Below are positions 8,411-41,690 of a stretch of DNA of 64,000 nt, one piece after another. The stretch is taken from assembly GCA_010909165.1 (NCBI GenBank), contig MU008234.1:1-64000 (forward strand), in the 5' to 3' direction. The stretch's first letter is position 1, and every line of letters starts with the position of its first letter. This stretch comes from Anthoceros angustus (lineage: Eukaryota > Plantae > Anthocerotophyta). Position numbers and translations under genes: made by a program. The notes under the pieces were generated by a model. That model was given only the letters and a program-made list of their open reading frames with translations, did no database searches and was not told the origin of the DNA.

Positions 8411-8517
8411 ATTGCGAGTCGTCATCCCCCTTTCAACTCGTGCGAAAGGGCGCCGAAGGGATGAGTATCGACGGATAGAGGCAATCCCGGAGAGGTTAGC
8501 CGAGCCATCGCGCCAGA

Positions 8518-14000: not shown

Positions 14001-14560
14001 CACAGGAAGACTACGCCTTACAATCCGAAAGCCAACGGACTCACGGAGAAGACAAATGGGTTACTATGCAACATTTTGACAAAGTGACCTCCCCATATGT
14101 ATGATGGGATACCAAGCTACACTGCTATGGGCTTGGATCATGGAGAAGGTGACCAAAGAAGACAGACTCTCGATATACGATGTCACCCGTAATGCCACCG
14201 AATTTGAGGTACCAACGATAGAATTATGGAAGATGAGCGAATGACGGTGGAAGATAGTGAACAAGCGGTTGGAAGAATTTAAGGCATGAGGAAACAGAGA
14301 CGATGCCTTAGAGGAGACACACATGCAGTGAAGAGGAAGGAGAGGCACGATGGGAGGCTTCACGTGACCCTATAGTAGCGGAGACTTGGTGCTTTACGAT
14401 AGTAGGTATTTAGATTTTCCCGGGAAGCTACGAGATGGATGGGGCCTATGGGTTGTAGTCTATGAAAATGGGTCGGGCTTGGAAAGTTTCTGGGGAACTA
14501 CTTCCTACCAGAGTGAATGGGTGGAAGATCAAGAAGTACTTTACACTGAGGATGTTTGCG
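11090..14560 (+). CDS. pol: Gypsy Pol: aspartic protease, reverse transcriptase, RNase H, integrase (frameshifted)
   Basis: AP: LRMADQT...LIGRPWL. RT: KLNEATKKDHHP, LPFGLCNAPATF and a degenerate YxDD region near 12430. RH: PNW..PFHVFVD and TIEREALGIIYS. INT: HTKEAGGH...CDACQR, PFEKWGIDFVGP, LVSDRGTHF, TTPYNPKANGLTEKTN, FPGKL. Confidence 0.93.
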
Positions 14561-14567
14561 GGCGCAA

Positions 14568-14586
14568 ACAAATGGGGAGAGGAGCA
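14568..14586 (+). promoter_or_regulatory. Polypurine tract of Gypsy family 1
   Basis: aaatggggagaggagca lies immediately before the TGTGG LTR start at 14587. Confidence 0.8.
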
Positions 14587-17058
14587 TGTGGAACGAAGAA
14601 TTTTGGTCACCCAAGAGGCAGGAGACTGACGAAGGATGAATAGTGGTTCGTGCAGGTAGTAGGTAGGTCGATAGAAACAGTAGGAAGATGGTAGGACGTC
14701 CGAGGGAGTTCGGGACTTAAGAATCGCGTGTAGTGAGGAGGTTCGATCGGGTAGAAAGTATGGGTAGATAGAAGCATATAGGCATGATAGGTTCCAAAGT
14801 TCCTTGGACCATGGGAGTAGGAATATTCGGGATAAGAAGTTCCTTGGCCTTCAATTATTTAGGTTCCGCATGGCTATATATGCCAAAAGGGCTAGTTGTT
14901 GTAGATGGAAAATGGCTATGGAGTTTTGAACCCGACACGTGGCACCATCGTGGGAGGAGCGCAACAGATTTGCATGCACCGTTAGCCGTTAGTGGTTTTG
15001 AACGGGCGCCTTCAGCGAACCGCAGCGGCACCGAGGGAGTAAGTGGAGTTGCGCTCAAGAAGGAAGGCGCAGTGAGCGGGCGCCTCACCGATTGCGGGCG
15101 CAGCCGGAGGGAGCGAAGGCCGAGGCGCCGAGGCTAAGAGCGAGCTAAGGGCATGAGCGATTGCGGAAAGGAGTTCGAGGGGGATCCGCAAGGCGCGAGT
15201 GGAGGTGCTCGAGCGGAGGCGATTGTGAGAGGCGCCGAGGTGAGCTGGAAGACGCCAAAAGGCGAGCAAGGTGGAGAAGTTGCTGGAGGGGAGATTGAAG
15301 GGGCCAAGGCCACCTCTTAGTGGTTGCGTTGAGGCCGACTGCCGAGGAGCGGAAGAACTCCCCTGTTGCTCTCACCCAAACCACCACCTCTTTGCTCTCC
15401 ACTCTCTTAGCCCGATAGATTACTCCAATCTCTCCAATTTTGCTATCCTTGTGTGTGCTCTGCGATGGTAAAGATAGTGAGGACGGAACGGGGTACTCCC
15501 ACGGGAGGAAACCTCCGCCGCCACACCGCCCACAAAGGGAAAAGGTAAGAAACACCCACCCCGAGTTCGAGTAGTAGGCCTCCAATTTCACCTCGAGATT
15601 TGAGGCGCTCGAGCGCCCCGAGATGAAGATGGAATGGCTGTACTTGGTACCTGGTGGCACTTTGCGAGCCCCGCCTTGGTTCGTGGAGTGTGCGCGACGA
15701 ATGAGAGTGACCAAGGCACGCCCCTGGAGGATGCGACATCAAGTCATCCCGGGATGTGGAAGGTACGCATTTCCGTGGATACGATTTGATACCGAAGCCC
15801 ACAAGGGAGGGATCCCGGCAGGTTCTCCAAGAATCGATCCCGGAGGAGGTTATGAGTCATGTTCCTACGACCAAAGGAGGAAGTATGGTCGCAAGGCAAT
15901 GGTGGAGGATCTTTGTTCAAGGAGCGGAAGTGGAATTTATTCGCCAAGATATGGCTGACTAACGCGCTGCGAGGAAGACGACTGGAAATTCCATTTAATG
16001 ATGATGTATGAGATGTCTGGAAGTTGGTGGATTGGGCCACCATTCTCAGTATGAACAAAGCGGTTGACCGAAACCATTTGGTGATGGAGGGAGCAAGAAT
16101 CGCTTTGTCTCTACCTTCCTCGACACCTATATCGAGGGAGGAGGTTCTTACAGCTGACGAGCTGGAAGAAGCCAAGATAGAAGCTACTCTGGTGAGGGTA
16201 GCGGAAGGGGAGCCATCGCCCCTGGAGGATGAAGAGAGGAGAGGCCCCGGGCAAGAGACCGCCACGCCCATGAACCAACATGAGGCCTCGTGGATCGAGA
16301 ACCCAACAAGAGAAAGGGAAGAAGGCCATAGAAGCACCTCCTACGGAGGAAGGAGGAAAGGATACGAGACCACCTACCGGAGGGTTGAGGATTGGAAGGC
16401 CGACAACACCTGGTAGGGAGTGAACCTCTACAGAGGACCTGTGGAGGACGGAGGACCTACGGTAGGAGCTTTACCTCCTACCAAGAAGTAGTAACAAGAG
16501 GCGTGGAGAAGAACGCCGAGGAGCTGGTGACCCACGCACCAACGGGAGGAGCGAGGGAAGTGTTTGAGAACCGGCATCCTCTGAGGGTAGTTGGCCGAAG
16601 GAAGTGGGCGCAGGATCTATGGACGCCCTAGTGGACCGTGTCGGAGGTGACCAAGTTCGTGGCCGAACTCGAGACCTACGAAAGGAGCCGGAGGATGCCG
16701 AGAAGAAATTGAGAGGAGCTCAAAACCACCTCAGAAGCAACACTCCGTGCTAGATCCGCCAAAGAGCGCGACAGATGACCACCAAGTTGGTGAATGTGTG
16801 GAAATGATTGACCGTGTCTTAGGACAGAGGCAAAATCAGCCAAGAGGGCCGAGTTGGCCAGAAGGAGGCGTAAGAAAGTTGGAAGCTACCTAGCAAGGGT
16901 AGGACACATCGAGCAAGGAGGAGGCAAGATTCTGGCAAGGCCCGTGGGACCTTGAAGACGAGAAGGACCTCCTACGAAGAAGTTAGTTGCCATGGAGCAA
17001 CGGAAGGAGCATTACAAGGGAAAATACGACTCTTGGTGAACGACAAGGATGGGACAAT
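14587..17058 (+). repeat. 3' LTR of Gypsy family 1 (partial; ends at the N)
   Basis: Colinear with 4032-~6530; the differences are largely small indels. Confidence 0.9.
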
Positions 17059-17059
17059 N

Positions 17060-19333: not shown

Positions 19334-22005
19334 TGTGGGAGGGAAAACCCCGGGGCTTCCCCCTCTAGCGGCCACACTTATCCCACTGTCGTTTCGTACG
19401 TTGGGTTTTGTCCCATGAGACTTGTGTGAACGATCGGGTTCTAGGGAAACAATCGCTACCTGCAGTGACACACTATCTCAGCCTTCTAAACAAGCAAGGC
19501 GCCCTCTACTCTCCCCCTTACAGTAGCTGCGCCACTTGCACTGCTCCTAAAAATTCCCAATCCTCGGCCTACAACGACACGACACAGTTGCGGGTCCTGC
19601 CTTAGCAGCAAGGAGTCTATCACGGGCACCTGTGGGACCCGATCACACCGCACTGTCCCTTCTACTAAGACCAATCTTCTCCACTGTGGAGCCCTCTTAA
19701 TTGTGCATTTGGGATTCGTCCCTTAGGCTCTCACTGTGGCCTTCCACACCACGCCTCCCCTACACTCTAATCCTCTACTCATCTCCTCATCCTCCTCCTA
19801 TTCTAACCTCGTAGGGCTTCATCGGCCGGCTCGCCCCTCACGACAACCTCTGGGTCCGCCTACACACCAAGAAGTTCTTCCTTGGGCGGTTGCTATGAGT
19901 TTGACACGACAATGAGAACCTGGAGTCTTTCCTGTAGTCTACCCTCAAGCCGAGAGTTCCTTGGGCATTGCCACACACCAAAGCAAAGCAATTTCACAAA
20001 GAACCATTCACAAGGGAGCAACTCGTCGAGGCGCTCGCAGGAAGCAAGCCCTCTATCAAGCACTCCGACCACCGCAACTTCCTCTCTACCAGACACTGCG
20101 TTGGCTCATAGCCGGCACGAAATTTCTTTACAAGGGCAAAGGACTCGCAAGTATGGAAGTGCAAGACGTGATACTTTACTTTGTGAAATCCTCCTCCTCT
20201 TATGGGAGGCCTTCCACATACAACCTCCCTTGGGTGACCCTGCTGCAGGCCACCTTTCCCAATATTTTATTCCTACACGCCCATTTAAGTCCACAGCATC
20301 TAAGTCTACTGTCTGATCCTAGGTAAATTCTAATCTAGCAATTTCACCTAAGATCATTCTTAAAGGATGTCAGGCTACATCACCTATCCTTCCCATTCTC
20401 CAAAGCTCATTTATGGTCCTTGACCATTCCTAGTCCTCATCTTGCTGGGGTGGTGACGCGTCTCCTACGGGTTGGCTCCCTCGCCCTCTTTTTGCTCCTG
20501 TCCCCTCCCCGGATCTTGTCTTCTTCCTAGCTTGTGGGGCAAGTACCATTACGCCTTCCTTCTGCTCATGACGCCCGATTCCTTCACCCTCGAGGCGCGC
20601 CCCTTCCATGCCAGCGGCCCATCTTCCGGCCTCGCCGCTTGGCGCGCTCCTTCAAGCACCCTACGCGGTGATGCGAACTACAGGGGTGCGACTTCTACCA
20701 TGGTAGGTTGATCCCTTTCCCTTGTTCATCTCCTTCCTTCTTCGCATCGGCGAGGGCTTCCTGGGTCAAGATCTCCATTGCTCTTTTGCCTGCTTGTTTG
20801 ATTTGTCCATACCTATCATAGAGCATCTTCAAAGATCCTTCATCTCCATTCGCCGAACCATGCCGGTCTCCTTACTGATTCCTCCGGGCCTTTTTCGTGC
20901 TGGACTCCTCTCCAGGCCCCGGTTCCTCTCTATTTGTGGGGTGAGGGAACTTCTCACCCCTTCCTGTCCTCCGACGGGTCGGACCCCGTCCTTGATCTCC
21001 TCCGGTGGGGCTGCTCCCTCCACCGCCCTGTCTCCTCCTCCTGGGGGGTGTGTCGGACCCCGGCTCCATCCTCAGCACCATGGCTAGCTCCTCGGGACCT
21101 CGCGGTAGGTCCTACCTTCTGCGGTGATGCGGGACTACAGGGGCGTAGGTCTACCACCAGTGAGGGCGCCTCTTGGTGGTGGTGATCTCAAGTAGTGGGG
21201 TGACCCCACACACCTGCTCGCCTCTCGGCGCCATCTTCCCCTCGGCGCGGTCTCCTCTTTTGTTTCCCGGACTCACCGAGGTCCATGTCACTGTGGCCTC
21301 ATCAAAATCCAGGCCTCGGCTGCACTTTGGCGATCCTACGATCATCATCATGAGGACCCAATGTCCTCCTCTTGGCCAGCGCAACACCTGTTGGCCTTCA
21401 ATATCGGTTGTGGAGATGGGCCCCAAGCTATGATATTGCATTTGGAGTCATCGAGCTCACGTAGGCCATTCTCCATCTTCACACCTACCCTTGTAGGCGT
21501 CTCCTTGGTGGTCAATTCGCCCACCTTCACATGGAGGTCACATTCTCCTCCTTGCTTCCCCTCATTGGCTGGCCAACTTGAAGGGCATAATCCACTTAAA
21601 ATCGTCTCTTCCTCACCACCAGCATCCTATGCACCACCTTCTTATGGTGCTCCTCCTCCCGGACCTCCTCCGCTCCAAGTCCGCTAGTTCTTTGGGCAAG
21701 TCTCTCCCTCTCCTCGGCAAGCAACCTCTCGCTCGACTCTTGCACCGGTCTTGAAACCTAACCCGGCAGCTTCTCTCAAATTGAACCGGGTCCTTCGTAA
21801 TTCCTCTTCCATGTCCCGGATTTTGATGGCTTGAGTGGCCATCACCTGCTCCTGCGCCTCCACCTGTTGGACCGCCCGCTTCTCTCTCCCTAGAGCCTCG
21901 GTCTTGCTTCTTCGCTCTTGCTCTAGTTGGGCAAAATGCTCCTCCGCCTTTTGCCTCCATGTGTCCCGTTGGGTTGTTGCCCGGACCGCTCTTTCCTCTG
22001 TCCCA
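19334..22005 (-). mobile_element. 3' part of a Gypsy family 2 LTR (reverse strand), including the C-terminal half of its LTR-encoded ORF
   Basis: Reverse-complement match to about 52450-55288. It terminates in ...CCACA at 19334. The other end is an abrupt junction into Copia gag. Confidence 0.85.
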
Positions 22006-22009
22006 GACA

Positions 22010-24285
22010 TCTTCTCTGAAGTTGTAGGAGCTTTACTTGAGGAGGAATCAAGCCGTGGCTCCAATCCACAAACTGGCCAAGGTAGCACCAACCACGCACT
22101 CTTCACCTCTCGAGGCCGAGGTGGTAGAAGAGGTAGAGGACGCGGTGACTTCTCCAACCGTCGACCCTTCGACTCGCGACCTTATCACATGGAGGCTACA
22201 ACAAGCACGCCGGAGATGGTCCAGAAAGAACTGACAAAGGACCCGCAGGCGGTGCGATCCCGCCGAGCACAAGTGCAAAAAGAAGCAATCGGGAGAACCA
22301 CGGCATGACTCACCTAGAAATGAGTTGAACTTGTTGATGATTCCCAAGTAACCACCAGCAAATTCTATCCTAGCTGTATGTTTCATGCTAACAAGGACTA
22401 ACAACTGTCGATGGTTTCTGGACTCAGGGGCAACCACCCATATGTGCAGCAGCAAGGAAATGTTCACATCCTATCACCACGTGCTATTTAATCAAGACAT
22501 CTTTGTAGCGATGACGACCACTCCATCCACCATACATTACAGGCGAGGTTGCATAAGGCCCATCAGCAGGGAATCCCTCATTATCAATGGCGTGCTCCAC
22601 GTACTTGCAATGACCAAAAACCTCTTGTCAGTGAGGAAGTTGGCCACAGAGCACGACCTCACCATTATATTCACCATTATATTCCAAGGAAATCACTGCA
22701 CAATCTATCGCTCGAAGGACAAGCAGCAGAAAGCACTAGCTCATGGACTTCCCTACAACGATTTGTACTTGTTGAACATACAGTCTTCTTCATCACTCAT
22801 GGCGGACAGCTCTTCACCAGCCTCTCACAGCAACACCTTGCTATGGCACTGCCGGGCCGGCCATATCAATCCTCGTTCCCTGGACGCCTTCGCCAACCCT
22901 GCCATGTACAAAGACCCGTCAACGTTAAGTCCACCAAGAGTTTTTTCTGTGAGATCTGCCAGTATTCCAAGTTGATTCAACTTCCCTTTAAAGATGCTTC
23001 ACCAACAAGAGCTCGACGACTCTTGGAGACTATACATTCCGACATCTGCAGCCCAATGAGCACATATAGCTTCGGAGGCCACTCCTACTTCCTTACCTTC
23101 ATGGACGAGTGGAGCAGGTATTGCCACATTTATTTCCTTCGCCACAAGGATGAGGCCCTCACCTGTTTTCAAGAGTTTGTGCTAGCGGCAGAACAACAAA
23201 CAGAATTTCAAGTCCTGCCTCAGCGTGATAACGGGCGGAGAATATGCTAAACAAAAGCATTCCACGAGTTCTTAGATCTAAGGATCCTCCGCCCATTACT
23301 GTACCACACACTCCATTTCCCGAACCCTTTTTAGCGCCTCACAGATCCTTCTCGATTTCTGCTCCATCCTGAAGCTATCCTATCTCTCTCAATGCTACTG
23401 GGTTGAGGCCGTAGCTACAGCCAACTACCTCAAAAATAGGCTTCCTACCAAAGAGCTGCCAGGTACCACAGCTTTCGAGTGCTGGACAGGTAACAAACCC
23501 AGGATCTCCCACCTCCGCATTTTTGGCGGTCCTGCCTTTGCCCATGTCCGAGACGCTACTCGTGGCAAATGGGATGACAAGAGCCGCAAGCTCCTCCTCA
23601 TTGGCTACTCAGATCAGGTCAAAGCCTACCGCCTTTTCGATCCTGCCACCAGAGAGGTAATCCTTTCCCGTAGTGTTCATTTCCATGAATCCCTCGTTCT
23701 TCACACTTACCTTGCCTCTCTCACCTCTCTCCCTACTCCTGGCATTTCAGGCCTCCTACCTTCCGGTCATTCCCCCCTTGACCTTGAGGGGGCCACATCT
23801 TACTACGAAGAAGATGACATGCAAGCTCAAGAGGAGAACCAGATTATCTACCCTGCTCCAGGGCCTGTACCTCCTCAGGCACAACCACTCCAGGTACCCC
23901 TACCCTTGCCTATTCAACCTGCTCCACCAGACAACCACCTGGAACACCCTCCTATCCCAAACCAGCAGGACCACGAGGTAAATATCCCTGAACCCGAACC
24001 ACCACCTCTCGGCAATCTACTCGCCATAGGCCACCTAACCATCAATGGAGGATTGCTAACAAGACCTGGAAGCTCACTGACCTGCCTGCTGGGCGGAAAC
24101 CAATCTCTTGTAAATGGACTTTTAGAAGGAAACTCAATCTGAGTGGAATTTGTCTCAAGAGTACAAGTCGGGCATCGGGTAGCCCGTGGTTTCACGGTGC
24201 GGCTTGACTACGAGGAGAGCAGGACCTTCTGACCCAGTCGTCAAGGCCACATCCATTCGAATCCTCTTAAACGTGATAATCCTGG
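22010..24285 (+). mobile_element. pol: Ty1/Copia internal fragment: Gag C-terminus, protease, GAG-pre-integrase, integrase and start of RT
   Basis: SEVVGALLEEESSR; WFLDSGATTHM; LLWHCRAGHIN; LLETIHSDICSPM...GGHSYFLTFMDEWSRYCHIYFL; RT start near 24140-24270 (RLVARGF/LDYEETF-like). No LTRs were seen. Confidence 0.9.
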
Positions 24286-24528
24286 AAGGGGGTTAATATA
24301 CGAACCCCCTTCCACACTAACCAAACCCCCTTCACAAAAAAGACACTGTTCCGGAAATGCGCAATGTGGCGAATCCACCGTCACCAGCACCATGCTAAAT
24401 ACCATTTGCCTCGGAAAACTTGAGATTCAACAATTCTTAAAACAGATAGGGCTTTGTTGGCGCGGCCACAAATCTAAAACTCTTCCCTTGCCTACTGACT
24501 ATGGTTAGAAACAAGTAATGAAAGGAAA

Positions 24529-27500
24529 TCAAGATATCACAGTTTCAAAACCTCTTCCTCCTCTCCAAAATAAGTCGCCTCCTGCAGATCTCGGAGGACT
24601 GATCTGAGACTCATACTGTGCTTGGGTGTCTTCTGAATCTAAAACAACTGCCAGGTTGCGCATGCGTTCCAATTCTACTACGTCGAAGCTGTCAGTTTCT
24701 GCCAGGGCTTTCGCTTCATCATCTTCTTCGTTGTCTCCTTCCTCCTTGTCGCCACCACTCCCAGACTGCCATACAATATCCAGGGTTTGTTGTCCTTCCT
24801 CTAGCAAGTCCCCTGTTTGCGTTTTCATCCTCCTTGCACTAAGTGGAACAACCTGAGCCTTCAAACAATTTTTTTCGCTGATACAAACTTCTTTAGCCCA
24901 GAACTGTGCTGCTCCTCTCCGGTGGGCATCGAATGTGAGCTCCTCTTTCCAGTCTAGCAAAACCTCGAAACCATGTATGCGTTGTGGGATATAACCAGCA
25001 TAGCGGAGGTCAACTTCTATGGCAATAGAATTGCGTCGAGCAATCTTGCCGTGTTGTTGTCCCACTTCTGCGCAACCATCCGTCAATCTCCTTCTTTGAG
25101 AATGTTTTGATGAATTTCATCATCAACCCGAGAGGTCTTTAGTACACCACCACTTGTCTTGAGACATGTACACGCTTCTTCACCTATCATGTGCAATCAC
25201 GGATCGTCCATTGTTAAAAGTCCCTGCGTAATATTGGGCGTCATAGCCGCCTTGTCTTGAGCCTTCCTTCACACAACCCCTTATGTACTCCTTTTCCAAA
25301 TCCACCTGTCATTACTCATGTTTGTTTTGTCCCAAACGAAGGACACCATTCCACCCTTGCCACATAATCACGCATGCACTCTCTCAAGGTGAGCTTCTTC
25401 CACTCCGTGCATGACAATGAGCACGAATTCTTCCATGGTCGTCTTCTCGAAGCTTTGGAAAAGCGTTCATCATGCACGCATCCACCGACTATCCATAGGA
25501 CCAATGTCAAAGCCTCTTGGGACATCCATAACGAGAAGGGTATAAGCCCGCAGAAGGAATCCCGCATCTCCATAATGTTTCTTTTTCCACTTGATAGTAA
25601 CTCTTTCCCCACGGAGCAGTGAACAAGTGCGATCTTTCAAATCCTTGTCGATTGCATGCTCATCCTCAAGACTCTTCCGGTTGTTAATCTCAAATATAAA
25701 GTTCTTGAAATCCTCCGGCAGCTTTTGCAAATTCTCCACATCCTTTATTTCTTTGAGCAGAAAGAAAAACGTTAGGCGAGGACACCACATTCCTATTGTA
25801 TTCAAACAAACAAGCGATGGCGAAGGAGGTGTGAAAGGCGCGGCGCGGCGCCTTCACCACCTCCATCCTCATTGGTTTGCACCATGCCCGCAGGCGGCGG
25901 CGGCCTTGAGCTACCACGGCGCCCATGGGCGCCAGCGGCGCGGCGCGCGCCGGGCGCGCGAGGCCGCGCGTGTGGCGCCGCCGGGGCGGCGCGCTGGGCC
26001 GCCCGCCCCTCCCCGTGCCATTCTCGAGGGCAGCGGGCGCGCCAGCCGGCGCCATGCAAAAAAACCAAAGCGACTCATTATCGTGGTTCGGATCTCACCT
26101 TCCCAAAGAAAAGCCGTTTGAAAGCAGCAATCATGTCGTCCGTTGAGTGTAGGATATTCCTTCCTCACTTCCTCGAAAGATGAGCACTCCAGATGTTTAG
26201 CCATGGCCACTTGAATAACATGCAGTTTCTTTCTTGAAGTAATTTCGTCCTCCATTCCTTTGAGATCGAGGATGCCTGTCAGTACCTTCCCTGTTGCCGT
26301 GACAAGAATCTGCTGCCCACATTCACCCGCTGGTATACCCTGGAATGATTTCCAGGGTTTCGCGAGCATGTCTTTCGGCTTGAAATACACTGTTTCCACG
26401 TGCTTGGGATCATCTGTGACTTTCCTTTTTCCCTTCCCTTTTTTGTTGGTGCCAGCAGGTATGTGCTTCTTCTGCTCAGGTAACTTGCCTGCTTCCCACT
26501 TGGAAAAGATCTTATCAATATTATCCCATTCCTTGCCCTCCTGCTTTGAGATGCACAATATGTGTTCTCTGTTATCCACTTTGTTCTGCTTGTAGACGTC
26601 ATCTTTGCGCCCTTCATCATCTTCAATTAATCCAAGAACCTTATAGAAATTGAACTTCCAGGACATGGTCATCTGCACTCCATCACAACGCGCAATAAGA
26701 AGCTCATCCCGTAAATATCTAACCTGTTCAATAGAAGACATTTTCTTCCGCTTATCGGACATTGTGTTATGGTCGGTTGCAAGAACTCTCATCTCGTGCA
26801 CCGTAAGCCCACGGTATACATGCGCTTCAACATATTGAAAGCAGGACTTCCGAGCAATATCAAGTGCTTCATAGCAGACATATGTGTGGTTCCCCAAGTA
26901 CACCCATAATATATTTCTTGGCCGAATTTACTTGTCCAACTTGCTAATATCGTTGCACTCCCGGTCAATCATGCACTGGGCGAACCCTTCTTCAATCCTT
27001 CCCTTCGAAATAACTCGGGCTAGGTAGTTTGACCATGCCTCGTCCACCCTCCTGATTTGGGCATCTGGTGTAATATAAGATGCTGGCTTCAAATTCTCAA
27101 GCTTTACCAGTATTGTCTCCGGAACAACTTTCTTTGCATAGCGAGTCACGATTATTGTCAATGGGTCTGATTCCCGGATGGCATCTTCAAGTCTTTCCTC
27201 ATCTGTCACGACATGGATCGCTATATATCTGGTGGGCTTCACTCACGGTTTCCTTCCAGGATTTCTTCTTTCTCTTCCCCGGTGGAGCCTCGCTATGTGT
27301 GGTATGCTGTTGCGTGTGCCCACCATGCCTTGCTCTCCCACTCGAGTCCCTGTCTCCATACTCTCGGATCGGGCGGACACAGGTGCCTCAATAGAAGCTG
27401 CCTCGCCCGCCCACCGCTCACACCGTCTCTTCCCGCAACAATGGCAGGGCGTGCGCAGTTGATCGGCGGGCGCCCGGGGCCTGGGATACCAGGTTGGGTA

Positions 27501-27745
27501 CCTCCATGGAGGAGCCGGGAAAGGAATGTCCAACAGCGGAGCATCCCTTCCATCCTCCGCCTCCGAAAGTCGTCATCGTCGGAGTGGCCAAGGGCGTCGG
27601 GTATACACCCATCCTCCTCATCGGATGGGCCGAGCTCACTACTTCTGCGCTCGGCCGGGTGAGCCCATGCACACATCGGCGGGCTCGACTCGTCGTTGTG
27701 ACATTTCCCTCCTATCTTTGGATGACGGATTCGGTAATCTTCCAT
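24529..27745 (-). CDS. ParB-like domain fused to a beta-class amino (N4-cytosine/N6-adenine) DNA methyltransferase-like domain; frameshifted in this assembly
   Basis: ParB-like N-terminal part: AQIRRVDEAW...GNHTY...VYRGLTVHEMRVLATDHN (27060-26766). MTase motif IV region: YTLLVMDVPRG (DVPR at 25526-25515). C-terminal part: RPLGLMMKFIKTFSK, EGD, DGCA[G]SGTT (one G restored, 25081-25054) and RNSIAIEVD (25036-25010). This matches the N6_N4_Mtase consensus KP..L...I...S..GD.VLDPF.GSGTT...R.FIGIE.D in beta order (IV before I). Confidence 0.8.
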
Positions 27746-27859: not shown

Positions 27860-30750
27860 AAACCTTATTCCAAAGTTTTACTTACGGTTGGGCACTAGCA
27901 TTTAAATCCTCCACGAGTTTGAAGGATGCACTTCTTGCTTTGGAAGCCATGTAGGTGACCTCATAAGCCTTGTACATGGTTTCATCTTCGCTTATCCGAT
28001 CAAATACCAAAGGCTTTGTTGTGCACAGAAAACAGCTCTCGTCCATCCATATCCACGATCGCCCATAGAACCCGGCCACCTTGCTCTGGTTTGGCAAGGC
28101 CCCTTGAACCCTCGACCCACAATTTGATAGAGTCCAAAATTGTTCTCCTCAAGGCTCCTCATCTGTGTCAACATCCGGTCCTTCTCGAGCAGTGGCCTCC
28201 ACCTTGCTCCCCAACCGCGTATAGCAGTATCCTCATAGTTAAATGGCGTTGGAATAGGCGCGATTGCTGTGGGGTCTCTTCCTCGGTCTCCTCCTGCGTG
28301 CCTTCTCCTTCGTTGTCTTGGCCTTCCCGGATGTTAGGATTTCCCATGCTTGCCCCTTGACAAATTACCTCGGGGCTGGTGCTTGATGGCTGGGTTGTAT
28401 CGCCTCCACAGGAGGTGCCGCGCCTTCTCCAACATCCACACCATTCACCGCATCCTTCCTTCTTCTTTGGGCGGGATTTCTTGGTTTTGGGCATCGGGTC
28501 GATGTGCCTCAGTTCTCCACGTTCCTTCCTACTTGTCTTCCGCTTGCCATCCTCAAGAGATTAGATACAATCCATAGGAAGCACAATTCAAAGAAGGAAT
28601 CGGTCGCACAAAAGAGGAAATTTGCGAGGAAGGGAGGGGCCATCATGAGACTATGGTGTGCGAAGAGGAAATGGCGGAGGATCGCGGTAGCGTGGAGAAG
28701 TCGCGTCTTTGGGAGGCAGTGCCAAAGTCCTTCTGCTTGAGGAGCTTACGGCGCCGCCGTTCTGGCTGGAAGAACTCTCTCTCGGGTTACTCTCCACTTG
28801 ACGAAAGTATGGCCCGTTCGGTCATACACAGTCATGTCTTGGCAACCTAACCATAAATGTCAATTAAGGTAATGATTACATGGAAAACCATTTATAGGAC
28901 CCTAAGTCAAAAGCCGTACATGAACCCCAATGCCAGAAAACAATGAAGAGGCGGTGTGCCTCAGCCAAGATCTACCGGTGAAGATCTTTCGGTTTATTTG
29001 CTCATAATGGCATTTCCACCTTACCTTGGTGCCTACTATGTCATACCACGCTGTGAAGAGAGGACCATATTTCGAGAGGTTAGAGGTGCGGAGTCCTCGC
29101 GGCGACAATGTTGCGCGCCACACACACATCGATGTCGAAGAGGTCGAGTTTTTCCACAAAGTTCATTCCTACGTTTGTATGCGATCAAGGAACATGTACT
29201 TGAGAACAAGTGTTGGGTTTGCATCGATCTCCGTCTCATCCATGTAATGACGACATTGATGTTGTCGCGGAGGAGCAGTGTGAGGAAGAGGGGTCTTTGA
29301 TTTCGGATGGTAGGTGACTCTCTTGTGAGCCGGATGGTCAGTTGAAGGGGCCCCAGCGGCCTTCCGATCATGAGCAGCGAGTCCGAACTCAGGTTAGTTT
29401 GCCTTCAACAAGAAAGCGACTTGTTGCGGTCAATTGTGGCGAATAGTCCCACGGCGTCCGATTCCATCTCACCGCATGCACAGTGGTATTGCGGTAATGC
29501 TCGTCGCCATAGCGTCCTCTCCGGCATTCGCGTGGGGTGCCCATGACCCCGAACTTGAACTTATATCGCCATTGATGGGAATCACGCATCAGCGAAGACA
29601 CGGGAAGGAAGGGGATGGGGTGCGAATCCGTCGTGGTTTGTTCCGCCAAGGAGCGATGTGATGACCGCAGGGGGTCTTCCACAAGCAAATGATCCGTGGG
29701 TGAGGATGGGGATGATGACTTTGTTCACCCTCCTCCTGGTGCATCTGGAACATTCCATCCCAAGCCTTTAAGTGAGACATTGATGACAACAAAGCTTTCG
29801 GCGGACAAGCGCTGAGCGAGGCAGGTGTCTTTGCAAAAATGTGGAGAAGGTGACGGCGGACTTTCTTAAACCGTGTTGCAACCAAATGTGCATGCGAGGT
29901 TGACCAAGCAAGGCCTTGAGAACGATATAGGTTCCTCACAATGTGCGAGGCAAGAGCGAGACATTTCTTCAAAGCCTCGTACATCGGGACCGGAGTCAAA
30001 CTAACAAAGAAAGAGTTTTTACGCATGTTATGGGATCGGTTCCTCTGCTGTTTGTTGCGTGAAGGCCTTGAGAAGAGTATATTGTATGGGGCTGATACGA
30101 GGCGAAAGGGAGGGTCATGAGGAATGCCCGTGGGATAGTGTTCGAACCAACCCAATTCATAAGTCCGTCATGCACTTGGTGCTCTAAGCGTGGATGGATA
30201 ATGCTTTTGTTCATGGTGAAAGACTTCGTGCGTGGTGTATAACTTTGCACGACACCTATACAAAGTTGGAGATATGGTCATTGTACAAGCGGTGTCAAAG
30301 CTCTAGTGCGGTTTGTGACGTCTGGTTTTGAAGTTATGGAAATCTAACTTGTAGTGAAGATTCCCAAATCCAACGGGTTCTCGACACACTCAATATGTCT
30401 TGAGGTTAAAGACCACCATTGAATACAACTCAGAAGGTTGATCAAGGTAGATATCTACCACTAGTACAACCATGTGAGGTGGGAGGAGTTTTGAGTTCAT
30501 CCCATAGTTCGCGAATGAGCGGTGGTATGTGTAGATGGTTTGCAAACTTTGTGTCGGTCAGGGTGGGCCGGCCCAGCGCCCACCTCAGATGTTGATGGTT
30601 TTTGAGTTGCGAACCATGATTGAAACTTGCATGTCACTGTTCATGGATGGCCCCTGGGTTGTAGGTTGGTTGGGGCGAGTTTGTAGGTTCCCCGGGCCCC
30701 GCACCCGAACCCATCACCTTCAAACTGCTCATAATACATGACCTAGAAGC
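27860..30750 (-). CDS. Unknown, probably spliced gene co-oriented with and directly upstream of the methyltransferase gene
   Basis: Protein-like segments in several frames (NLSKYGPLFTAWYDIVGTKVRW; acidic linker EGEGTQEETEEET; FYGRSWIWMDESCFLCTTKPLVFDRISEDETMYKAYEV). AG acceptor-like sites at about 28846 and 28556. Boundaries are approximate. Confidence 0.45.
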
Positions 30751-33700
30751 TGAGGTTTTGTATATTTTGGATTATGGAAGATGGTAAAGGTTTGTGTGAA
30801 GAGGTGCTAGTCCACGGCATCAGTTTGTTGTATGCGGTGGTTTTCATGGATTCTGTCTTCGCTTGTGGTATGGCAGAAGCGTGCCCTACTAGAAAAGGCA
30901 GCCTATGTTACACTTTATGTTAAGATTTGGACCCCCGGATGTAACACTTATGTTGCAATTTTGGGGTCATGTAACACTTTTTGGGCCGCTTGTTACACTT
31001 TGGCTTGGAAACCAAACCGGAGTGTTTGTTGCAACCATGTTGCAAGTGTTGCAATTTTGTTGAGATGAAGTGAGAGGCGCTTTTGTCCTCTCTCAAGATT
31101 GCAACAGTTGCAACATATAAAGTGTTACAAGAAAAGTCTTGTAACACTTTTGGAGGCTCCGAACCTCCTCCCCATCTACCTTCCTCCTTTACTACATTTA
31201 CCATATAGAATACTTGGTTTCCTTATTACCTCGTATGAATACATATAAATAAATACATGTATGCATACCCTCATAGAATCGGTATTGGTAATATGCCATA
31301 TCGATAATTTCGTGACATACGGTTATATTTCATTTTGTATAAAACACGCTTATACGACAATCGCTGCATAAATTGTACACGTCCGAGGATACTATACTTT
31401 GTATTCATCATTCACGAAAACTGCGGATACATACATCCCACATTTCACCCCGCCTATTTTTGTGTATCCGTCGCGCAACCTACCTTCTAGCGGGCGTTAC
31501 GTGCGGCTTGTCCCCATGCCCATCGGCTTCTTGCCATGGCTCGCCCACCCTTCTTATCGCATTTACTACTTTGTCCTTCCGCCTAGGAGTTTGCTTTACC
31601 GTGGGTTCTTTCGCTCCATACATGCCTTCATTTCTAATTTCCTACTCCTCATCGTATGCATGAGAAGGAAACCTCCTACAACCCCTGCTTTTGCGATTTT
31701 CTTCCTCCCTTCCTCTTGCGTCGTCTCATGACCAGCTTTCCCTTTCCATCGCATCCACCTCCCTTCCACTCCTGACGCACCACGGTACAAACATCGCAGC
31801 ATGCCCTTCAAGACATGTGCAGATATAGTGGTGTGCACAACGACCTTCAATTGCTTACCTTCCCGACCCCATCTTTTCTTATGTACCTCTTGCCCACAAT
31901 CCGCTCCTTCCATCCTCGCTGTGGCGCCCGTGCCTGTCACACGGCCCCGCCGATGCCTCCAGCACCTCCCCGCTTTCCTCTTTCGGCCTCCACCTTTTGT
32001 CATGTGGCGTAGCCTCCAATGGGGCCCAGTGGAGGTCCATGCGATCGGAGTGCGCTGTATGTGTCTGCACGGTTAGGCACGCCCTCAATGTCGCCCCTTC
32101 CTCATACTCGCGCCATCTGTTGTTCGCCATCAATGTACCCCTTTGCTGCCCCGCCTTTCTCCCTCCCCTCGAAAATTCCCTCATGGCTGCCACTCGCCTT
32201 TTGGCCCCACCACGACCATGGCTTGCCATGGACCCGCCTCCATTCGCCACCGCCTCCCTCTCCCACCCCATTTGTTCAGCACGCTGACCATGCCTGCCCT
32301 TCCGGACGACAATTGCCTCCCCGCAGCGAATTCTCATCCGCCCGATTCCATCCCTCATGTCTTTCACGGCCCCTCGTCACTCCTCGACCCCATCTCCGTC
32401 CACAATGTGCACATTACTGGCGGACGGCACCTCCCAACACACGCCCTTTACCGGCTGCCCTCTTGACACACCCTCCTTCCGTGAACCGGCATGGCCTCTG
32501 GTGATTCCAAGTCCCTCCCCTCCTCTCCCACGCCATGGCAGAACTTGACGGTGACGGGCACACCTTCGGTCCGCCATGGCCGCCGCCTCTCCTACACATC
32601 TTCTCACACTCGGCATTCACACTATCACCGGCATGGCGTTCCATCACCTGGGTGATCGTGGCGTTCGCCACGATCACATTGCCATAGCCTCATCCGCACC
32701 TTCATGTTTTGTCTCCCTCCTCTCTCCCAATGCATTCTACTCCCACCGTCCTCCTACTTATCCCCCCACATCCACACCACCACCTCCTGCGGTGCCCTCT
32801 TCCATCCTTCGTCTCGGAAATGCCACGATCTGGATCCATCTCCAATTCCATGTCGTTCAACAAAATTGTCATCTCCCTTGTCCTCCTGGCCAACCTCCGG
32901 GTGGTTCGGTTATTCCATGTCTTACCTGTATGAACTGGGAGACCGCATCGCAACCGCCCAGAGGTTGCATGGAGATCGTCCTCGCCTCCCAAATTCAGCC
33001 TCCTCTTGATTTGGGTACCTACCATGCTTCTTCTCAAACCGAAGCACCCATCCAAGACGCCTCCCTTGCCCCAAGGGTTTGGCCCCAGCTTTTGCCTCTC
33101 TTGCTGCAAGTTCATACTTGATGGCTCGAACTTCCTGCTTCAGCTCCATCCGAGCCTGTGCAAGGGCATCTTCCACTCCTCCTCGTCCACCATGCTCGGC
33201 TTACCCGCTCCTCCCCTCCTCTCCCCTCTCCCCTCTCCTCTAATGCCGCGCCTTTGCGGCCTCCACATCGAGAATTGCGTGCGAGTCATCGAGAAGTGTC
33301 GGCTTATCTTGGACTTCACCACCGGTCGGGAAGGCTTGACACCGATTTCACTAACCGTCCCTTCTCCCCTAACGCCGCGCGCCATCTTGCCATGTTCCCA
33401 GTTCATTCACAACCTTTGTCCTCACGGCCAACAGCCGTGCCTTTTCGCTCGAACAACATCGGATTCCCTTCCCTTCCTGTCCTTTGCTTTTGCATTGCCT
33501 CCTTCACCATTTCACGCCATTCCTTTTATCAAGGTCACCGTGCATCGTTGTCCACCTCACACCACTCCATCGCATCCGGTGCACACCCTCCTCTTGTCAT
33601 CACACCTCCCCTTGGCCGCCCGCCATTCCTCATCCGCTTCAGGCGCGGTCGGCGCCACGGGACCCGCCCCCACGGGTTGCCCCGCCTGCCTGCTTTTGCC

Positions 33701-34649
33701 TTCTCTCCCCAACCACCTCCCGTGTTGCCATGGGCTGCCTCCACATGTCTGCCGCATGAACACCGCCAAGATGCACAAGCTCGCGAACCGCATCAACGTG
33801 TGTACAAATTGAACAAGACGTTCTTGTCAATCCGTCTCGAAACACCCACCTCATCGATAGCAAAGCATCGTCACCATCGCTGCGAACGCAATGCTCCAAG
33901 TCCGCGTCGGGGCTGGGATATTCCACGTCTCCATGTCCTCAACCGCCATTGGTTGGCTGCCATGTTCCCTTGTCCTCACAACTCTCCGTGTGTCTATGTA
34001 GGCGGTGGCACGGTGGTAGCGCTGGATCGGAGAGGTGTTAGGTGGCTGGGGTGGATGGCGGTAGCTCGAGACGAGCTTGCCCTCTCATCCTCCCCACCCA
34101 CCTACGGATAGGCGTCGGCGGGCGACGCCGATGTGCTTCTAGCGGGGTATCGATGTCTGCAAACTCGCCCACGCCTTCCTTCCGTCCATTGCCCGGACGC
34201 CACCGCGCCATCTTGAAGGCATTGGCTTGCCCTTCCGATAGTTGCCAAGCCAAGGGTCGCCACGCCAAAATTCAAAGCTCTTCATATGGAAAGCCTTTGT
34301 TTGCAAACTCGTCGGCGGTCATTAAGCTTCGGAACCGTCCTCACTGCCCTTTCTCCTTCGCCATAATGACTAGTGTTTTATATTACGACAACTTGTAGTC
34401 CCTTGCCCACAATTGAGTGATCTAGAAGAGGTCATCATTGCATATTGCCGATAATCGGTCCATGTGAACACCGCCATCAAGACCACGGTATTTAGTAGTG
34501 TCACGTTGGTTCTGTCTTCCATTGGAGCCACATTACGTCAAGAGTCGGGAGGTTCGCCCCATCGTAGTGTCACGTTGGTTCTGTCTTCCAATGGAGCCAC
34601 ATTACTCCGTCCGGAGGTTCGCCCCATCCTCGACGTCCATAGGCCACAT

Positions 34650-37380
34650 GCCATGCGCTATATGGCTCCGTCCACTCGCTCCGCGTCCCTCCATCCCTCG
34701 CCGGGTGGGTACGCGGGCCCAGCCTATGTCATCCGCCTCCGGATGCAGATGCATCACTGCGATGGCCACACAAACGGACCATCTATTGAGCGCACCCTGT
34801 AGACGCAAACTTTCTCCGTATTTACAATGTCAAATCCGGTGTACGACTTTCGCAGCGATGGCCTTGTCCCTCCTGGCTGACACTCGTACCATCTAACCTT
34901 CAACAGAATTGGCTTAAACTCCTGCGAGAACTGCAAGCGGAGTATTTGCTCTATGTGCCCGTAGAACGGGCGCTCCTCTTCAATGTCGCCGCCACCGCCT
35001 GTCCATCATGATAAACTTTGCGCTCACCGCACTATCCTTTGTACTCCGGCGACGCTTTGTCCGCCTCGCTCGAGGTGGCGCCTTTGTTCCACATGTGGCT
35101 ATATGCCACCGCTGCAACGCAGCCCATCCATGATTGCGGTCACTTCGTGGGTCATGCAAGGATGCCCATCCCATGCGTTCGAGCCCTTCTTCCATATATC
35201 ATCTCGAAAGTCCGACCATCCTGCACCGTTTGTCCTAACTTCTTCCTCGTACATGTCCAAGAACCGCAGCACCTCCGTGATACAGCACATATGTGTGCGC
35301 CTGTCGTGCCTCCACGGCATCCATTATGTACGCACGGCCGACACCCAGCACCTTCTCCCCCATACGTTCATCTGCAGTCCATGCTTCTCCCACGTGAGCG
35401 TAATAACGGCGGAGAAATGTCATGCCGAAATGCAAACTCTCCTCACGCATGTACCCCACCGCTATACTGGACTCGGGTCTCGCGCGCTGTCGCACTGTCC
35501 GCTTCCTGGATCCTAAATATCTCTCCACCGGGTACATCCACCTAGTGTGAACTGGGCCCAAAGCGGCCACCTCGTCCACTAAGTGTAGTATGAGGTGGGT
35601 TGATATATCAAACATCTTAGGGGGAAATTGCTTTTCCAGAGAGCACATTACCCTCACTGCCTCTTCGCGCTGTGCTTGGATGTCCCGACTCGGTATCGTC
35701 ACCGGCAAATCCATAAGGCGTCCTAGCTTTACAACCGCCTTGTACACCTCGGCTCTATGCACCCCGGAGGACGATGGGGAATATGATTTCCAACATAATG
35801 TGCCGATCATGGCATTTGTTCGCTTTCCGCTTTCCACCTTAGGCTATGTTGGACCCATAGCTGTGCTTGATGCGTTTAATGCCCTCAATCACGGTCTTCA
35901 AGTCGATTTGGACAAACGACGGCGCTGCGGTATTGGCCATCGTCACTGTGCCACAACCATCTTTTCCTCCGCTTGCTTCCATGTCCATGCGAAGCAATGT
36001 CATCTCGCTCTCCGTGCCATATGGCCTCTGCATTGTTTTTCCACGTGCATCACATCCTTTGGCGCCCACACAAGCATGTGACGCCAATATGGCGGTGACT
36101 ACGAACAAGGGCGACATTCTCCACGGTTCCAAAGTTGCCCGACGGACGTCTGCAGTGTCGCTTTCTCTGCGTGCCATATCCGTCACAATATCATCGAGCG
36201 TTGGCGGCTTTGGTTTGGTCGGAGGTCCGCGATCCATCAAACCAATCGCATCCTCCCACCGCCCATCACATTAGCCGGTAGCCACCGCGATCCGACATAA
36301 ACGGGCTTTTCAAATCTGGAATAGCGAGAATCAAGGTCCACAAGAATCGACACACGCCGCTTCCTCTCACTTGCAATCCGGTGAGGGTACCCAACCCGGG
36401 TAATCGGCAATGATGCGAATCACGCGTAACTTGAAATGCCTCTTAGGATGGTTTCGGCATTGAGAAATCTTCCATGTCCACCCCTCCATAACTCTTGAGT
36501 TCATCTACCGGTGCCATGTACACATCGAAATTTTAACCATCCCGGCCCGGCACAATCGGAGGCATGATGACATGCGCGTCCTTTGTCTGGCCCAAGGTGG
36601 CATGTTGTGCACAAATACCAAAACCGCCATATGGACGTGTTTGAGTACCAAACGGGTTGAACCGTCTGGATAATGCTAACCTCAAGTTCCTCGGCTCATC
36701 GCCGAAACCATCAATCGCATCTAGTGCTCTCCATGCCGGGTATCCGCCATCATGGACATGTCCCCATTCTCGCTTTGCCTCCCGACATACCAAGTCATCA
36801 ATGCTTATTTCCGCCATTGAAACATGCGTTTGATCGCGGTTTCAAGGAAAATGCCGGAGGACCTTCCGAGGACTCCCCGGCTCATCAAACCCATCCCCGA
36901 ACGGCACACACTTTGGGCAATGGTTGCCCCCGACAATGTAACGCATTTTTCTCACAAGCATGGATTTTCTCATATCGGGGCCAAATAGGTGATGACTTGG
37001 CCTCGTACATGTCCTTGTAACTCGTCGAATCGGCAAAAATCCACACTTAAGATCTTTAAGAGGGTCTGCGACGCCATGATGTCAAACATGGTTTGCCAAG
37101 ACAACAACAGCGCGCTTAGCCGCTTTCGCCACTGCTCACTTGGTATAAAGGCGTCTGCCAGCGCGGCGCGTGCTGCGGCGCGGTTCCCTCCGTGCCAAGT
37201 GCATGATCGTTGCTTCGCAAGTCGTCCACAGTGCATATGAGGTACATCTTCACATCCGTTCCTCGTCCATGCTCTCATCGGAGCCGCCACTTTGGTCGCC
37301 CCCATTGCCTTGTCTCGCATTTCATACTCCTCGAGCCCTCGATCCGTCTGCGGTGGAGGCGCCTTCAAGGCCTCCGCCAC
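34650..37380 (-). CDS. tnpD: CACTA/En-Spm transposase TnpD (Transposase_21, DUF4218, DUF4216), frameshifted
   Basis: YEKIHAC; GFGDEPRNLRLAL...FNPFG; MCSLEKQFPPKMFDISTHLILHLVDEVAALGPVHTRWMYPVERYLG...RARPESSI; ILLKVRWY...TGFDIVN...PFVWPSQ. Confidence 0.93.
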
Positions 37381-40300: not shown

Positions 40301-40524
40301 TACATCATAGGGTTCGACCTACCACTTGTCCTTTTGTCATGGCATATTGTATGCGGGCCATGTACTTGCAAGGATCATAATAGATAATGGGCGATGTTTA
40401 TTGCCATTGTGGTTATAATGTCCGCCCGCAAAGGGAAGGGAAAACGAATGTAGGTGGCTGGATGATCTCCGCCCCACTCTTCCCTCCTCCACCACCACAA
40501 GGTTACGACGGGAGTGAAATAACT

Positions 40525-41140
40525 ACTTGGACCATGGTCATTTTGCATTGAACAATGGTCCTTGGTAGTATTCGTGAACAATGCATTAACCATCCTTGGA
40601 CCATGGTCATTCGATTGCATTGAACAATGGTCGATGATATTCATGACCACATATGCATTAACCATGGACCATGGTCATTCGATTGCATTGAACAATGGTC
40701 CTTGGATCTCGAAAAGTATTCAACATGTCGACACATATGCATTAACCATCCTTGGACCATGGTCATTGATTGCATAACAATGGTCCTTGGATCTCGAAAA
40801 GTATTCAACATGCTCAACACATATGCATTAACCATCCTTGGACCATGGTCATTCCGATTGCATTGCGAACAATGGTCCTTGGATCTCGAAAAAGTATTCA
40901 ACACTGTTCGGACACATATGCATTAACCATCCTTGGACCATGGTCATTCCGATTGCATTGCAAACAATGGTCCTTGGATCTCGAAAAAGTATTCAACGCT
41001 GTTCCACCACATATGCAGTAACCATCCTTGGACCATGGTCATTCCGATTGCATTGCGAACAATGGTCCTTGGATCTCGAAAAAGTAGTCAACGTTGTTCC
41101 ACCACATATGCAGTAACCATCCTTGGACCATGGTCTTTTC
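40525..41140. repeat. Tandem array, ~85-95-bp unit, about 7 copies
   Basis: Unit acatatgcattaaccatccttggaccatggtcattccgattgcattg..aacaatggtccttggatctcgaaaaagtattcaac starts at about 40650, 40733, 40819, 40913, 41008 and 41103, with partial copies upstream. Confidence 0.95.
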
Positions 41141-41164
41141 AACTCACAAACCAACAACATCCAT

Positions 41165-41690
41165 GGCCCATGGGCATCCGAGCATTGTTACCAATTTCGT
41201 CCTTGGGTCACGATTATCGCATAACCGCCTTACTATGGGGACATGCCAACGAACAAAAGACGAGGTGTGTGCGCCAAAAGAGCATGGCTAGGTGCGAGCC
41301 ATGAGGCCGACACACCGACAACACCATTCACCCATGGGCATCCAAGCATGCGCCAAATTCCTTGGGTCACGAAGGCGTTCAAATCTGCCGGCTATATATG
41401 TGAAGCACGGGACATGGCGCTTGGAACAGGTGACGGGTGTGCGACGCAAGGACGCTGCATCGAGGCCGGAGGTGTTATGGCTCGCACGAGAAGGTAAAAC
41501 CACCGATTCGGACGTGTTGTTGTCCGGTGGCATGCATGTTGAACGCGGGCCATGGGCGAATGACCATACAACATCCTTGGCACATGGGCATCCGAGCATT
41601 GTTACCAATTTCGTCCTTGGGTCACGAAATATTGTACAAAATTGCCGGGCTATATATGTGAAGCATGGGGACATGGAGCTTCGACAAATA
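41165..41690. repeat. Dispersed direct repeat (3 copies) catgggcatccgagcattgttaccaatttcgtccttgggtcacga
   Basis: Copies at about 41170, 41333 (diverged) and 41583. Confidence 0.75.

Follow-up and report, generated by a model that had tools for sequence, protein, structure and literature searches.

A ParB-methyltransferase fusion pseudogene in Anthoceros angustus, a probable relic of a DUF7869 DNA transposon

The sequence studied here, referred to as the window, is a 64,000-nucleotide stretch of the Anthoceros angustus genome (assembly GCA_010909165.1, contig MU008234.1, positions 1 to 64,000, forward strand). Its minus strand encodes, at 27419-24529, a ParB/Srx-like domain, a helix-turn-helix (HTH)/middle domain and a beta-class amino-methyltransferase, with one GT-AG intron. 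This ParB-methylase gene is accompanied by the remains of a transposase-like gene with a DUF7869 domain, into which a CACTA element and, later, a long terminal repeat (LTR) retrotransposon were inserted. The minus strand from 27900 to 24400 was read in three frames. The main frame runs from about 27245 to 25473 and contains QIRRVDE (27059-27039), LGNHT (26897-26883), LATDHN (26783-26766) and, past the intron, LLVMDVPRGF (DVPRGF at 25526-25509). It is followed by RPLGLMMKFIKTFSK (25138-25094), EGD (25094-25086), DGCA (25080-25069), SGTTT (25066-25052) and RNSIAIEVD (25035-25009). All the motifs quoted in the initial annotation were recovered on the minus strand, but they do not form the one intact gene assumed there after correction of single-base indels, since in-frame stops and frame changes interrupt the reading. 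EGD, DGCA, SGTTT and RNSIAIEVD alternate in frame, the last three occupying three separate frames, and the continuous motif DGCAGSGTT is a reconstruction only. As for the gene span first given as 24529-27745, homology support begins only at about 27419.

The first part of the ParB/Srx-like domain was placed at 26931-27419 (minus strand, as all parts of this gene). It contains an open frame (27242-26931) and is reached by relatives in tblastn: P0016 extends to 27419, P0017 to 27068 and P0031 to 26975. A tblastx comparison with the closest relative, contig L004, spans 27107-27021. An in-frame TAA stands at 26928-26930, just ahead of the Y.LGNH motif. L004 has a stop at the same place (its positions 1497-1503, ahead of Y.LGGNH) and a frame change there too; this common stop may stem from a dead ancestor of both copies, from the loss of a short intron or from coincidence. 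Exon 1 (26099-26903) is the best kept part according to phmmer and the family alignment. It contains GNH(T), the HTH (GLT..E.R.LATDHN) and a conserved middle domain. The intron, missed in the earlier reading, is 306 nt long and very GC-rich (25793-26098). It was defined by its splice sites and by frame continuity, the split codon (g and ga) giving ...FLWE-G-MWCP..., and the Riccia gene L008 has an intron at the same position. The linker and the methylase motif IV region (LLVMDVPRGF) follow at 25473-25792, supported by tblastn to L004 and L007 and by the family hidden Markov model (HMM). The decayed methylase core (25087-25472) retains FVWDKTN, EYIRGCVKEG and Y-stop-RPLGLMMKFIKTFSK, the last two each in a shifted frame. 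The motif I remnants (DGCA / SGTTT), RNSIAIEVD and an acidic C-terminal tail lie at 24529-25086, with support from tblastn of P0006 and the family HMM. The last open reading frame (ORF) of the gene has 185 codons and ends with a stop at 24531-24529.

In-frame stops were found at 26930-26928 (TAA), 25472-25467 (TGA TGA), 25370-25368 (TGA) and 25141-25139 (TAA), the last in place of the Q in YQKP, which is conserved in the family. At least five frame changes fall between 25320 and 25035, among them those near 25320-25290, 25261-25150 and 25097. The lesions lie mostly in the methylase part, and the upstream 1.1 kb (27245-26099) contains no frameshift. This indicates that the assembly is not generally indel-ridden and that the damage to the methylase part is real decay. 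The window copy is a dead pseudogene. Consequently, it writes no methylation, and the role of epigenetic writer proposed earlier does not apply to the present copy.

The core of the DUF7869 gene was found at 46587-47100 on the plus strand, directly right of the CACTA end, with the motifs IDGMDQ, LDN..RENKN and the start of GHTH. In tblastn, this core is 52-54% identical over 115 aa to fern and liverwort proteins (E 1e-35 to 3e-38), and the HMM matches have E values of 2e-30, 3e-19 and 4e-10. The nested LTR retrotransposon (47085-59335, with 260-bp LTRs that are 97% identical) splits the gene inside GHTH. Past this insertion, a weak continuation was detected at 59288-59635 (+; tblastn E 0.003; HMM positions 393-442, collinear, E 0.6). 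On the other side lies the nested CACTA/EnSpm-type element (30884-45432, minus strand). It is bounded by perfect 28-bp terminal inverted repeats (TIRs; 30884-30911 and 45405-45432) with a GTG target site duplication (TSD) on both sides, and it carries subterminal TGTTACAC/TGTTGCAA short repeats. Remnants of TnpD were identified in it as DUF4218 (35235-35837; Pfam, E 5.8e-26) and as a weak match to Transposase_21 (36533-36817). The right end of the CACTA element, together with the DUF7869 sequence next to it, has been duplicated in tandem (44671-45799 / 45790-46908; 1.1 kb, 91% identity). This produced a third TIR copy at 46518-46537 beside 45413-45432, with GTG after each.

Because the TSD shows the CACTA insertion to be precise and DUF7869 coding sequence lies to the right of it, the DNA to the left should be the upstream part of the same gene. 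This putative 5′ part (29787-30883, plus strand) gave collinear, weak HMM matches and is cut by the CACTA element at 30883/30884. With the CACTA element removed, the DUF7869 gene (+) stands head-to-head with the methylase gene (-), with about 3.5 kb from DUF7869 codon ~228 to the methylase 5′ end, and this layout matches the one found in other species. A weak match to integrase (rve) at 22549-23250 points to a piece of a retroelement next to the 3′ end of the methylase gene, and this piece may have deleted the end of the old element.

The relationship of the window gene to other sequences was examined piece by piece. In an exhaustive phmmer search against 1.84 billion representatives, the 268-aa piece at 26903-26099 gave only 23 matches, and the E values for plant relatives were 1.8e-37 to 1e-8. 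The named matches come from three land plants, Ginkgo biloba, the fern Adiantum nelumboides and the liverwort Riccia sorocarpa; the best match is a Logan contig (35% identity). A word-index protein search with the same piece returned zero matches. The motif IV stretch was matched in tblastn by L004 (E 5e-6) and L007 (E 8.6e-5), and the stretch after motif I by P0006 (residues 219-253, E 1.8e-4). The family methylase HMM found four collinear minus-strand fragments in the correct order at 25853-24532. Two of them are the best matches of the whole window (E 0.0075 for the motif IV region and 0.008 for the C-terminal part); the remaining pair scored weakly (E 1.4 and 7.7), and unrelated matches rank between these fragments. 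Judged by these sequence similarities, the homology of the window gene to the family is far beyond chance. The gene is multicopy: Riccia has three loci, which belong to different families, and Ginkgo has five or more paralogous models (69-95% identity). Two relatives from Logan contigs (P0007 and P0025, 533-549 aa) begin with a SAM_1 domain (sterile-alpha-motif, E 4e-8), followed by a degenerate GHHT and the conserved middle domain; a methylase was not detected in these two, which may represent a different, perhaps domesticated, architecture.

The methylase domain was assigned by way of the relatives. A Pfam scan of seven window pieces, which are short and broken, gave zero matches at E<=1. 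In contrast, the Ginkgo protein P0006 passes the N6_N4_Mtase profile (PF01555) with 65.7 bits (E 7.6e-18), and matches above the cutoff of 26.7 bits were also obtained for P0023 (42.3), L006 (48), L007 (37.6) and L004 (27.7). In the short contigs L004, L006 and L007, the match lies in an ORF downstream of the ParB-like ORF. The window copy is counted in this class because it is homologous to relatives that pass. The call of a beta-class amino-methyltransferase made in the initial annotation was thereby upheld; the profile check it had suggested gave matches for intact relatives and none for the window pieces alone. The motif order in the window is circularly permuted, as motif IV (DVPRGF, 25526-25509) precedes the motif I remnant (SGTTT, 25066-25052), and intact relatives are alike in this respect. 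The SAM-binding loop and the open frame are not intact in the window; there are relatives with an intact DLFSGSGTT or DLCAGSGTT. In comparison with the Protein Data Bank (PDB), P0006 scored best with the N6-adenine (N6A) enzymes M.RsrI, M.MboIIA and CcrM (E 2e-6 to 5e-6), and its values for the N4-cytosine (N4C) enzymes, PvuII and rotifer N4CMT, were 0.35-0.9. By sequence, the family methylase thus resembles N6-adenine more than N4-cytosine enzymes. The methylase domain of a relative also matched 1100 records of phage genomes at 25-27% identity. The two top phage matches were examined and are stand-alone methylases of ~240-260 aa lacking a ParB fusion; hence a phage origin of the fusion itself does not follow from them.

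The ParB-like domain was detected by structure comparison only. In a member-by-member Pfam scan of this region, one member matched DUF6551 (E 4.7e-3) and none matched ParB. An AlphaFold2 model of the relative P0031 (residues 280-579) has a predicted local distance difference test score (pLDDT) of 82. When this model was compared with the PDB by Foldseek, the top 18 matches were ParB, Noc or KorB, with sulfiredoxin and PadC next. The E values start from 5.4e-5 at probability 1.0, and the matches extend over the N-domain as well as the HTH. The window piece matches P0031 in tblastn with E 4.6e-17. By this modelled relative, the gene is predicted to have the ParB N-terminal (CTPase/Srx) fold and an HTH. 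The ParB-like domain first recognised from short motifs is thus supported by a structure model, where sequence profiles are blind to it.

Loci of relatives were taken from Riccia (L002, L008, L010 and L011), Adiantum (L001 and L003), an ENA contig (L005), Chara (L009) and oyster (L014). A head-to-head pair of DUF7869 and ParB-methylase genes was found at six loci of other species (L001, L002, L003, L005, L008 and L011), and at every relative locus with enough flank the DUF7869 gene is upstream, divergent and a few kb away. The pairs at L008 and L011 were reached by starting from DUF7869 proteins. The Riccia loci L008 and L002, which are on different chromosomes, are 72-88% identical over ~11 kb. 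This similarity stops precisely at a perfect 21-bp TIR (CATCCGCTACTTTAAAGCGGG), and this terminus is present at all four ends. In the third Riccia family (L011), a 23/25 TIR encloses both genes. A clear TSD was observed in one case, the 4-bp TAGA of L002; no convincing TSD was found for L011. The TIR of the DUF7869-type element starts with CA, which together with the possible 4-bp TSD makes superfamilies such as Chapaev or Sola candidates for DUF7869. These enclosed pairs in Riccia bear out the general view that the gene is transposon-borne. No ParB-methylase was found within 10 kb of DUF7869 at Chara L009, oyster L014 and Riccia L010, which means that this cargo is not universal to DUF7869 elements. 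The L008 element (Riccia sorocarpa CM100794.1) is flanked by two two-pore-channel-like Ion_trans / EF-hand / Ion_trans models (1-3804 and 24013-24286), and this 11-kb element may have landed in a gene of this kind or between two tandem copies of one. On its left side the flank is N-masked, which makes a TSD unreadable.

The DUF7869 gene itself is multicopy, with 18 gene models in Riccia and further copies in Ceratopteris, Adiantum, Chara, sea urchin and bivalves. Its invariant motifs IDGMDQ, LDN..RENKN and GHTH..ID are acidic. The AlphaFold2 model (pLDDT 82) showed an RNase H-like fold with moderate E values (1e-3 to 1e-2), the matches being RNase HI, the foamy-virus integrase core, a terminase nuclease, PIWI and TnsB. 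From this model, DUF7869 is best regarded as the putative transposase, perhaps of the DDE/D type, of a DNA transposon. A literature search found no mention of DUF7869, and the role of transposase would be its first functional context. Some DUF7869 proteins are annotated with extra domains, namely OTU (PF02338) in P0110 of Saccostrea cucullata and an rve integrase in P0077 of Adiantum; these may be real fusions or chimeric gene models.

Each element lineage has many copies of a palindrome of its own, which are found in introns, towards the ends and in the stretch that separates the two genes. At the loci examined, these element-specific palindromes are confined to the elements. In Riccia L008, TGTATGCRYGCATACA occurs seven times, solely inside the element, and the palindrome TGTATGCGCGCATACA is a candidate site for the ParB part. 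In L005, a GTCGATGC/GCATCGAC palindrome is present in 14 copies between the two genes. Palindromes with TGTATTC arms lie between the Adiantum genes (5 copies in L003 and 11 in L001), and L011 has 12 with TCCATGA arms. The Riccia palindrome of L002/L008 (TGTATGCG/CGCATACA) and the TGTATTC arms of Adiantum L001/L003 have a common outer TGTAT...ATACA despite the liverwort-fern distance. In the window, the intron contains three GC-rich palindromes (GGCGCCCATGGGCGCC, CGCGCGCCGGGCGCGCG and GCGCCGCCGGGGCGGCGC) at 25918-25992. The L008 intron at the same position holds 2.5 copies of the palindrome of that element, so palindromes may be a conserved feature of this intron.

We consider it quite probable that the window locus is a decayed accessory gene of a DUF7869 DNA transposon, and that it was transposon-borne but not on the CACTA element. 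Elements with the head-to-head pair between TIRs were demonstrated for Riccia; liverworts and ferns have the unit in common, and Ginkgo also has the fused gene. The hosts of this little-known transposon family are liverworts, ferns and probably Ginkgo. The corrected annotation of the window locus is that of a dead relic, in which the association with CACTA is a nesting artefact.

Several results weigh against this reading or against an active, self-targeting enzyme. Left of the CACTA element, DUF7869 is represented by weak HMM matches only (29787-29900, E 4; 30348-30419, E 0.27). No TIRs of a DUF7869-type element were found in the window when 22.8-24.6 kb was compared with 59.5-64 kb, nor was a TSD of such an element found there. 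The window also contains no recurrent palindrome with 7-nt arms occurring at least three times. In Riccia L010 (CM100796.1), where DUF7869 stands without the ParB-methylase, a palindrome specific to the element (CCCATGCG..CGCATGGG) is repeated ten times, on both sides of the gene and within it; palindromes of this sort may accordingly be sites for the transposase and not for ParB. ParB was not found by sequence profile, either in the window pieces (Pfam ParBc) or with the family profile against the PDB. The P-motif arginines (GERRxRA, box II), which ParB needs to bind CTP, are replaced: the family has GGNH(S/T)xxA(R/K), Ginkgo GGCHS and the window LGNHT, and the GGNH(S/T) motif is nearer to the sulfiredoxin type (GGCHR) than to the GERR of ParB. 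The canonical catalytic tetrapeptide (D/N/S)-P-P-(Y/F/W) is also missing, as the window has D-V-P-R. Motif IV is DIPY in Riccia and L006, DVPY in L007, DAPY in Adiantum, DIPH in Ginkgo and D-L-P-R in L004. The first Pro is therefore replaced in every family member compared, and the aromatic residue is lost in the subfamily of the window and L004. Since D(V/L)PR is common to these two, the Arg is a subfamily trait and not a random lesion. With a non-canonical motif IV, activity is uncertain, above all in the subfamily of the window.

For the family, a mechanism can be proposed. The ParB/HTH part would recognise DNA of the element, with the palindromes as obvious candidates, and would bring the fused methylase to it, so that the element might be marked with N6-methyladenine (6mA). 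N6A enzymes typically have an Asp in motif IV; because of this residue and of the PDB ranking, adenine N6 is the most likely target. Such a mark could protect the divergent promoter from being silenced by the host. Alternatively, it could gate transposition or couple it to replication, as Dam does for IS10 and Tn5. Self-marking with 6mA or N4-methylcytosine (4mC) is pure inference. The full scenario, that an undescribed land-plant lineage of TIR transposons based on DUF7869 captured a phage-type ParB-methyltransferase fusion together with parS-like palindromes, and that ParB loads and the enzyme writes 6mA on the element, is put forward tentatively, and we would not yet bet on it. If true, the element would have an epigenetic writer addressed to itself, by which it evades silencing or sets the timing of transposition. 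The compact unit of this family links four parts: a ParB DNA-targeting module, a methylase, candidate palindrome sites and a transposase-like gene. Few transposons bring along enzymes that modify chromatin or DNA, and those that do illustrate how mobile DNA manipulates the epigenetics of its host. The apparently intact Riccia copies make the idea directly testable.

Among the competing explanations, the one that survives best, although improbable, is that the locus is a pseudogene of a host (domesticated) methylase, for example of the Marchantia DN4MT1-type sperm 4mC writer, which merely lies among transposons. Horizontally acquired N4C methylases with host functions are known in Marchantia (bioRxiv 10.1101/2021.02.12.428880), Riccia is likewise a liverwort, and the intron is conserved. 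However, the family gene is multicopy in Riccia and Ginkgo and is enclosed with DUF7869 between TIRs, and its PDB similarity favours N6A enzymes. Motif IV is DxP(Y/H/R) and not TSPPY, which rules out identity with Marchantia DN4MT1.

It is very unlikely that the gene is intact in the organism and that its breaks are assembly errors. Several of the frame changes are clustered in 300 nt and look indel-like, but at least four breaks are stops of the substitution type, including the one at the conserved Q of YQKP, and the adjacent 1.1 kb is without frameshift. Moreover, two nested transposon insertions interrupt the transposase gene that partners it, which indicates that the element is old and dead.

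Slightly less likely still is the view, suggested in the initial annotation, that the ParB-methylase is cargo of the CACTA element with TnpD ~7 kb upstream. The TnpD is real, as confirmed by the DUF4218 remnant and the weak Transposase_21 match at 35.2-36.8 kb, and it is close by on the same strand. In red algae, elements of the CACTA superfamily (Plavaka) carry methylase and ParB-like genes (bioRxiv 10.1101/2025.02.11.637652). The ParB-methylase gene (24529-27419), however, lies outside the CACTA element by 3 kb, since the perfect 28-bp TIR pair with its GTG TSD delimits the latter at 30884 and 45432/46537. A scan for CACT[AG]-type TIR pairs and a general inverted-repeat scan around the gene revealed no pair enclosing it. 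Linkage to TnpD, recommended as a check, was not borne out in other species: no CACTA transposase stands beside the gene in the six relative loci with flanks, all of which have DUF7869. The CACTA link is coincidental, the result of a nested insertion.

Bacterial or phage contamination, or a recent raw fragment of horizontal transfer, can be practically dismissed: fusions of ParB and N6_N4 methylase are enriched in phages and prophages (PMC12704722) and the 1100 phage records match the methylase domain of a relative, but the gene contains a GT-AG intron placed as in Riccia, has plant retrotransposons and a CACTA element for neighbours and intron-bearing plant genes as nearest relatives, and the phage enzymes are only ~26% identical, the two top ones being stand-alone methylases.

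The closest known system was found in red algae. In Bostrychia moritziana, Plavaka, Mutator and Zisupton elements carry the accessory genes PAG2 and PAG3 (preprint 10.1101/2025.02.11.637652). They are alike in that a PF01555 methylase and a ParB-like domain are borne by DNA transposons, mostly as degenerate copies, and that inverted-repeat arrays adjoin the ParB-like gene, whose best HHpred match (PDB 7BNR) is also among the top Foldseek matches here. Unlike the fused plant gene, the red-algal domains are in separate proteins (methylase with SET, ParB-like with a 2-oxoglutarate (2OG) oxygenase), accompanied by a third gene; no SET or 2OG domain was detected in the plant family. The transposases also differ (Plavaka and others versus DUF7869), as do the hosts, which are land plants in the present case; this comparison was made by description only.

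Fusions of the ParB-CTPase fold with N6_N4 methyltransferase are a hallmark of phages and prophages (PMC12704722), as stated in the initial annotation, and ParB-Tls loci have been described as well (PMC4738411). The plant family shares with them the domain order, both folds and carriage by mobile elements. It differs in the presence of introns, of an additional long middle domain and of extra N-terminal sequence, in lacking the ParB P-motif arginines, and in a motif IV of DxPY type versus DPPY. Marchantia MpDN4MT1a/b and bdelloid rotifer N4CMT are likewise bacterial-type beta-class amino-methyltransferases in eukaryotes, one of them a liverwort. In contrast to the plant family, they are host genes with S-P-P-Y motifs and demonstrated 4mC activity; the plant family has D-x-P-Y/H/R, is transposon-borne and multicopy, and has better N6A than N4C structure scores. 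Retrotransposons with prokaryote-like adenine methyltransferases were reported in 2026 (bioRxiv 10.64898/2026.05.21.726589). Those elements also carry an amino-methyltransferase of their own, which was proposed to exploit or shape host chromatin marks. They occur mostly in unicellular eukaryotes and the text of that paper has no ParB, whereas the plant family concerns a TIR DNA transposon, land plants and a ParB fusion.

Two further systems offer precedents. VANC of VANDAL (Mutator) elements is an anti-silencing factor, in which a transposon protein binds the repeats of its own element to change their epigenetic state. Dam control of IS10/Tn5 shows that adenine methylation can gate transposase expression and end activity. 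Both are functional analogies only, with no sequence relationship to the plant family. No enzyme combining ParB with a beta-class methylase is listed for land plants in the 2015 survey of adenine methylases of eukaryotes, and our literature search found no description of the ParB-methylase plant family. It had been anticipated that related architectures might already be described; this was correct for the red-algal accessory genes and the methylase retrotransposons, in neither of which a ParB-methylase fusion is described. The concept is therefore known, and the fused architecture, the DUF7869 partnership and the land-plant distribution appear to be undescribed.

Other repeats were recorded in the window. 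A tandem array within the CACTA element (40520-41135, 4.3 kb short of the right end) consists of ~5 units of 95 bp (92% matches) with palindromic cores of the GGACCATGGTC type. Another LTR retrotransposon was found at 4032-17058, with 2.5-kb LTRs (4032-6510 and 14587-17058) that are 88% identical, and the sole N of the window is at 17059, directly after the right LTR. A 2.5-kb repeat is present in two copies of opposite orientation (19349-21995 and 52503-55263; 74-75% identical), one of which lies inside the nested LTR element.

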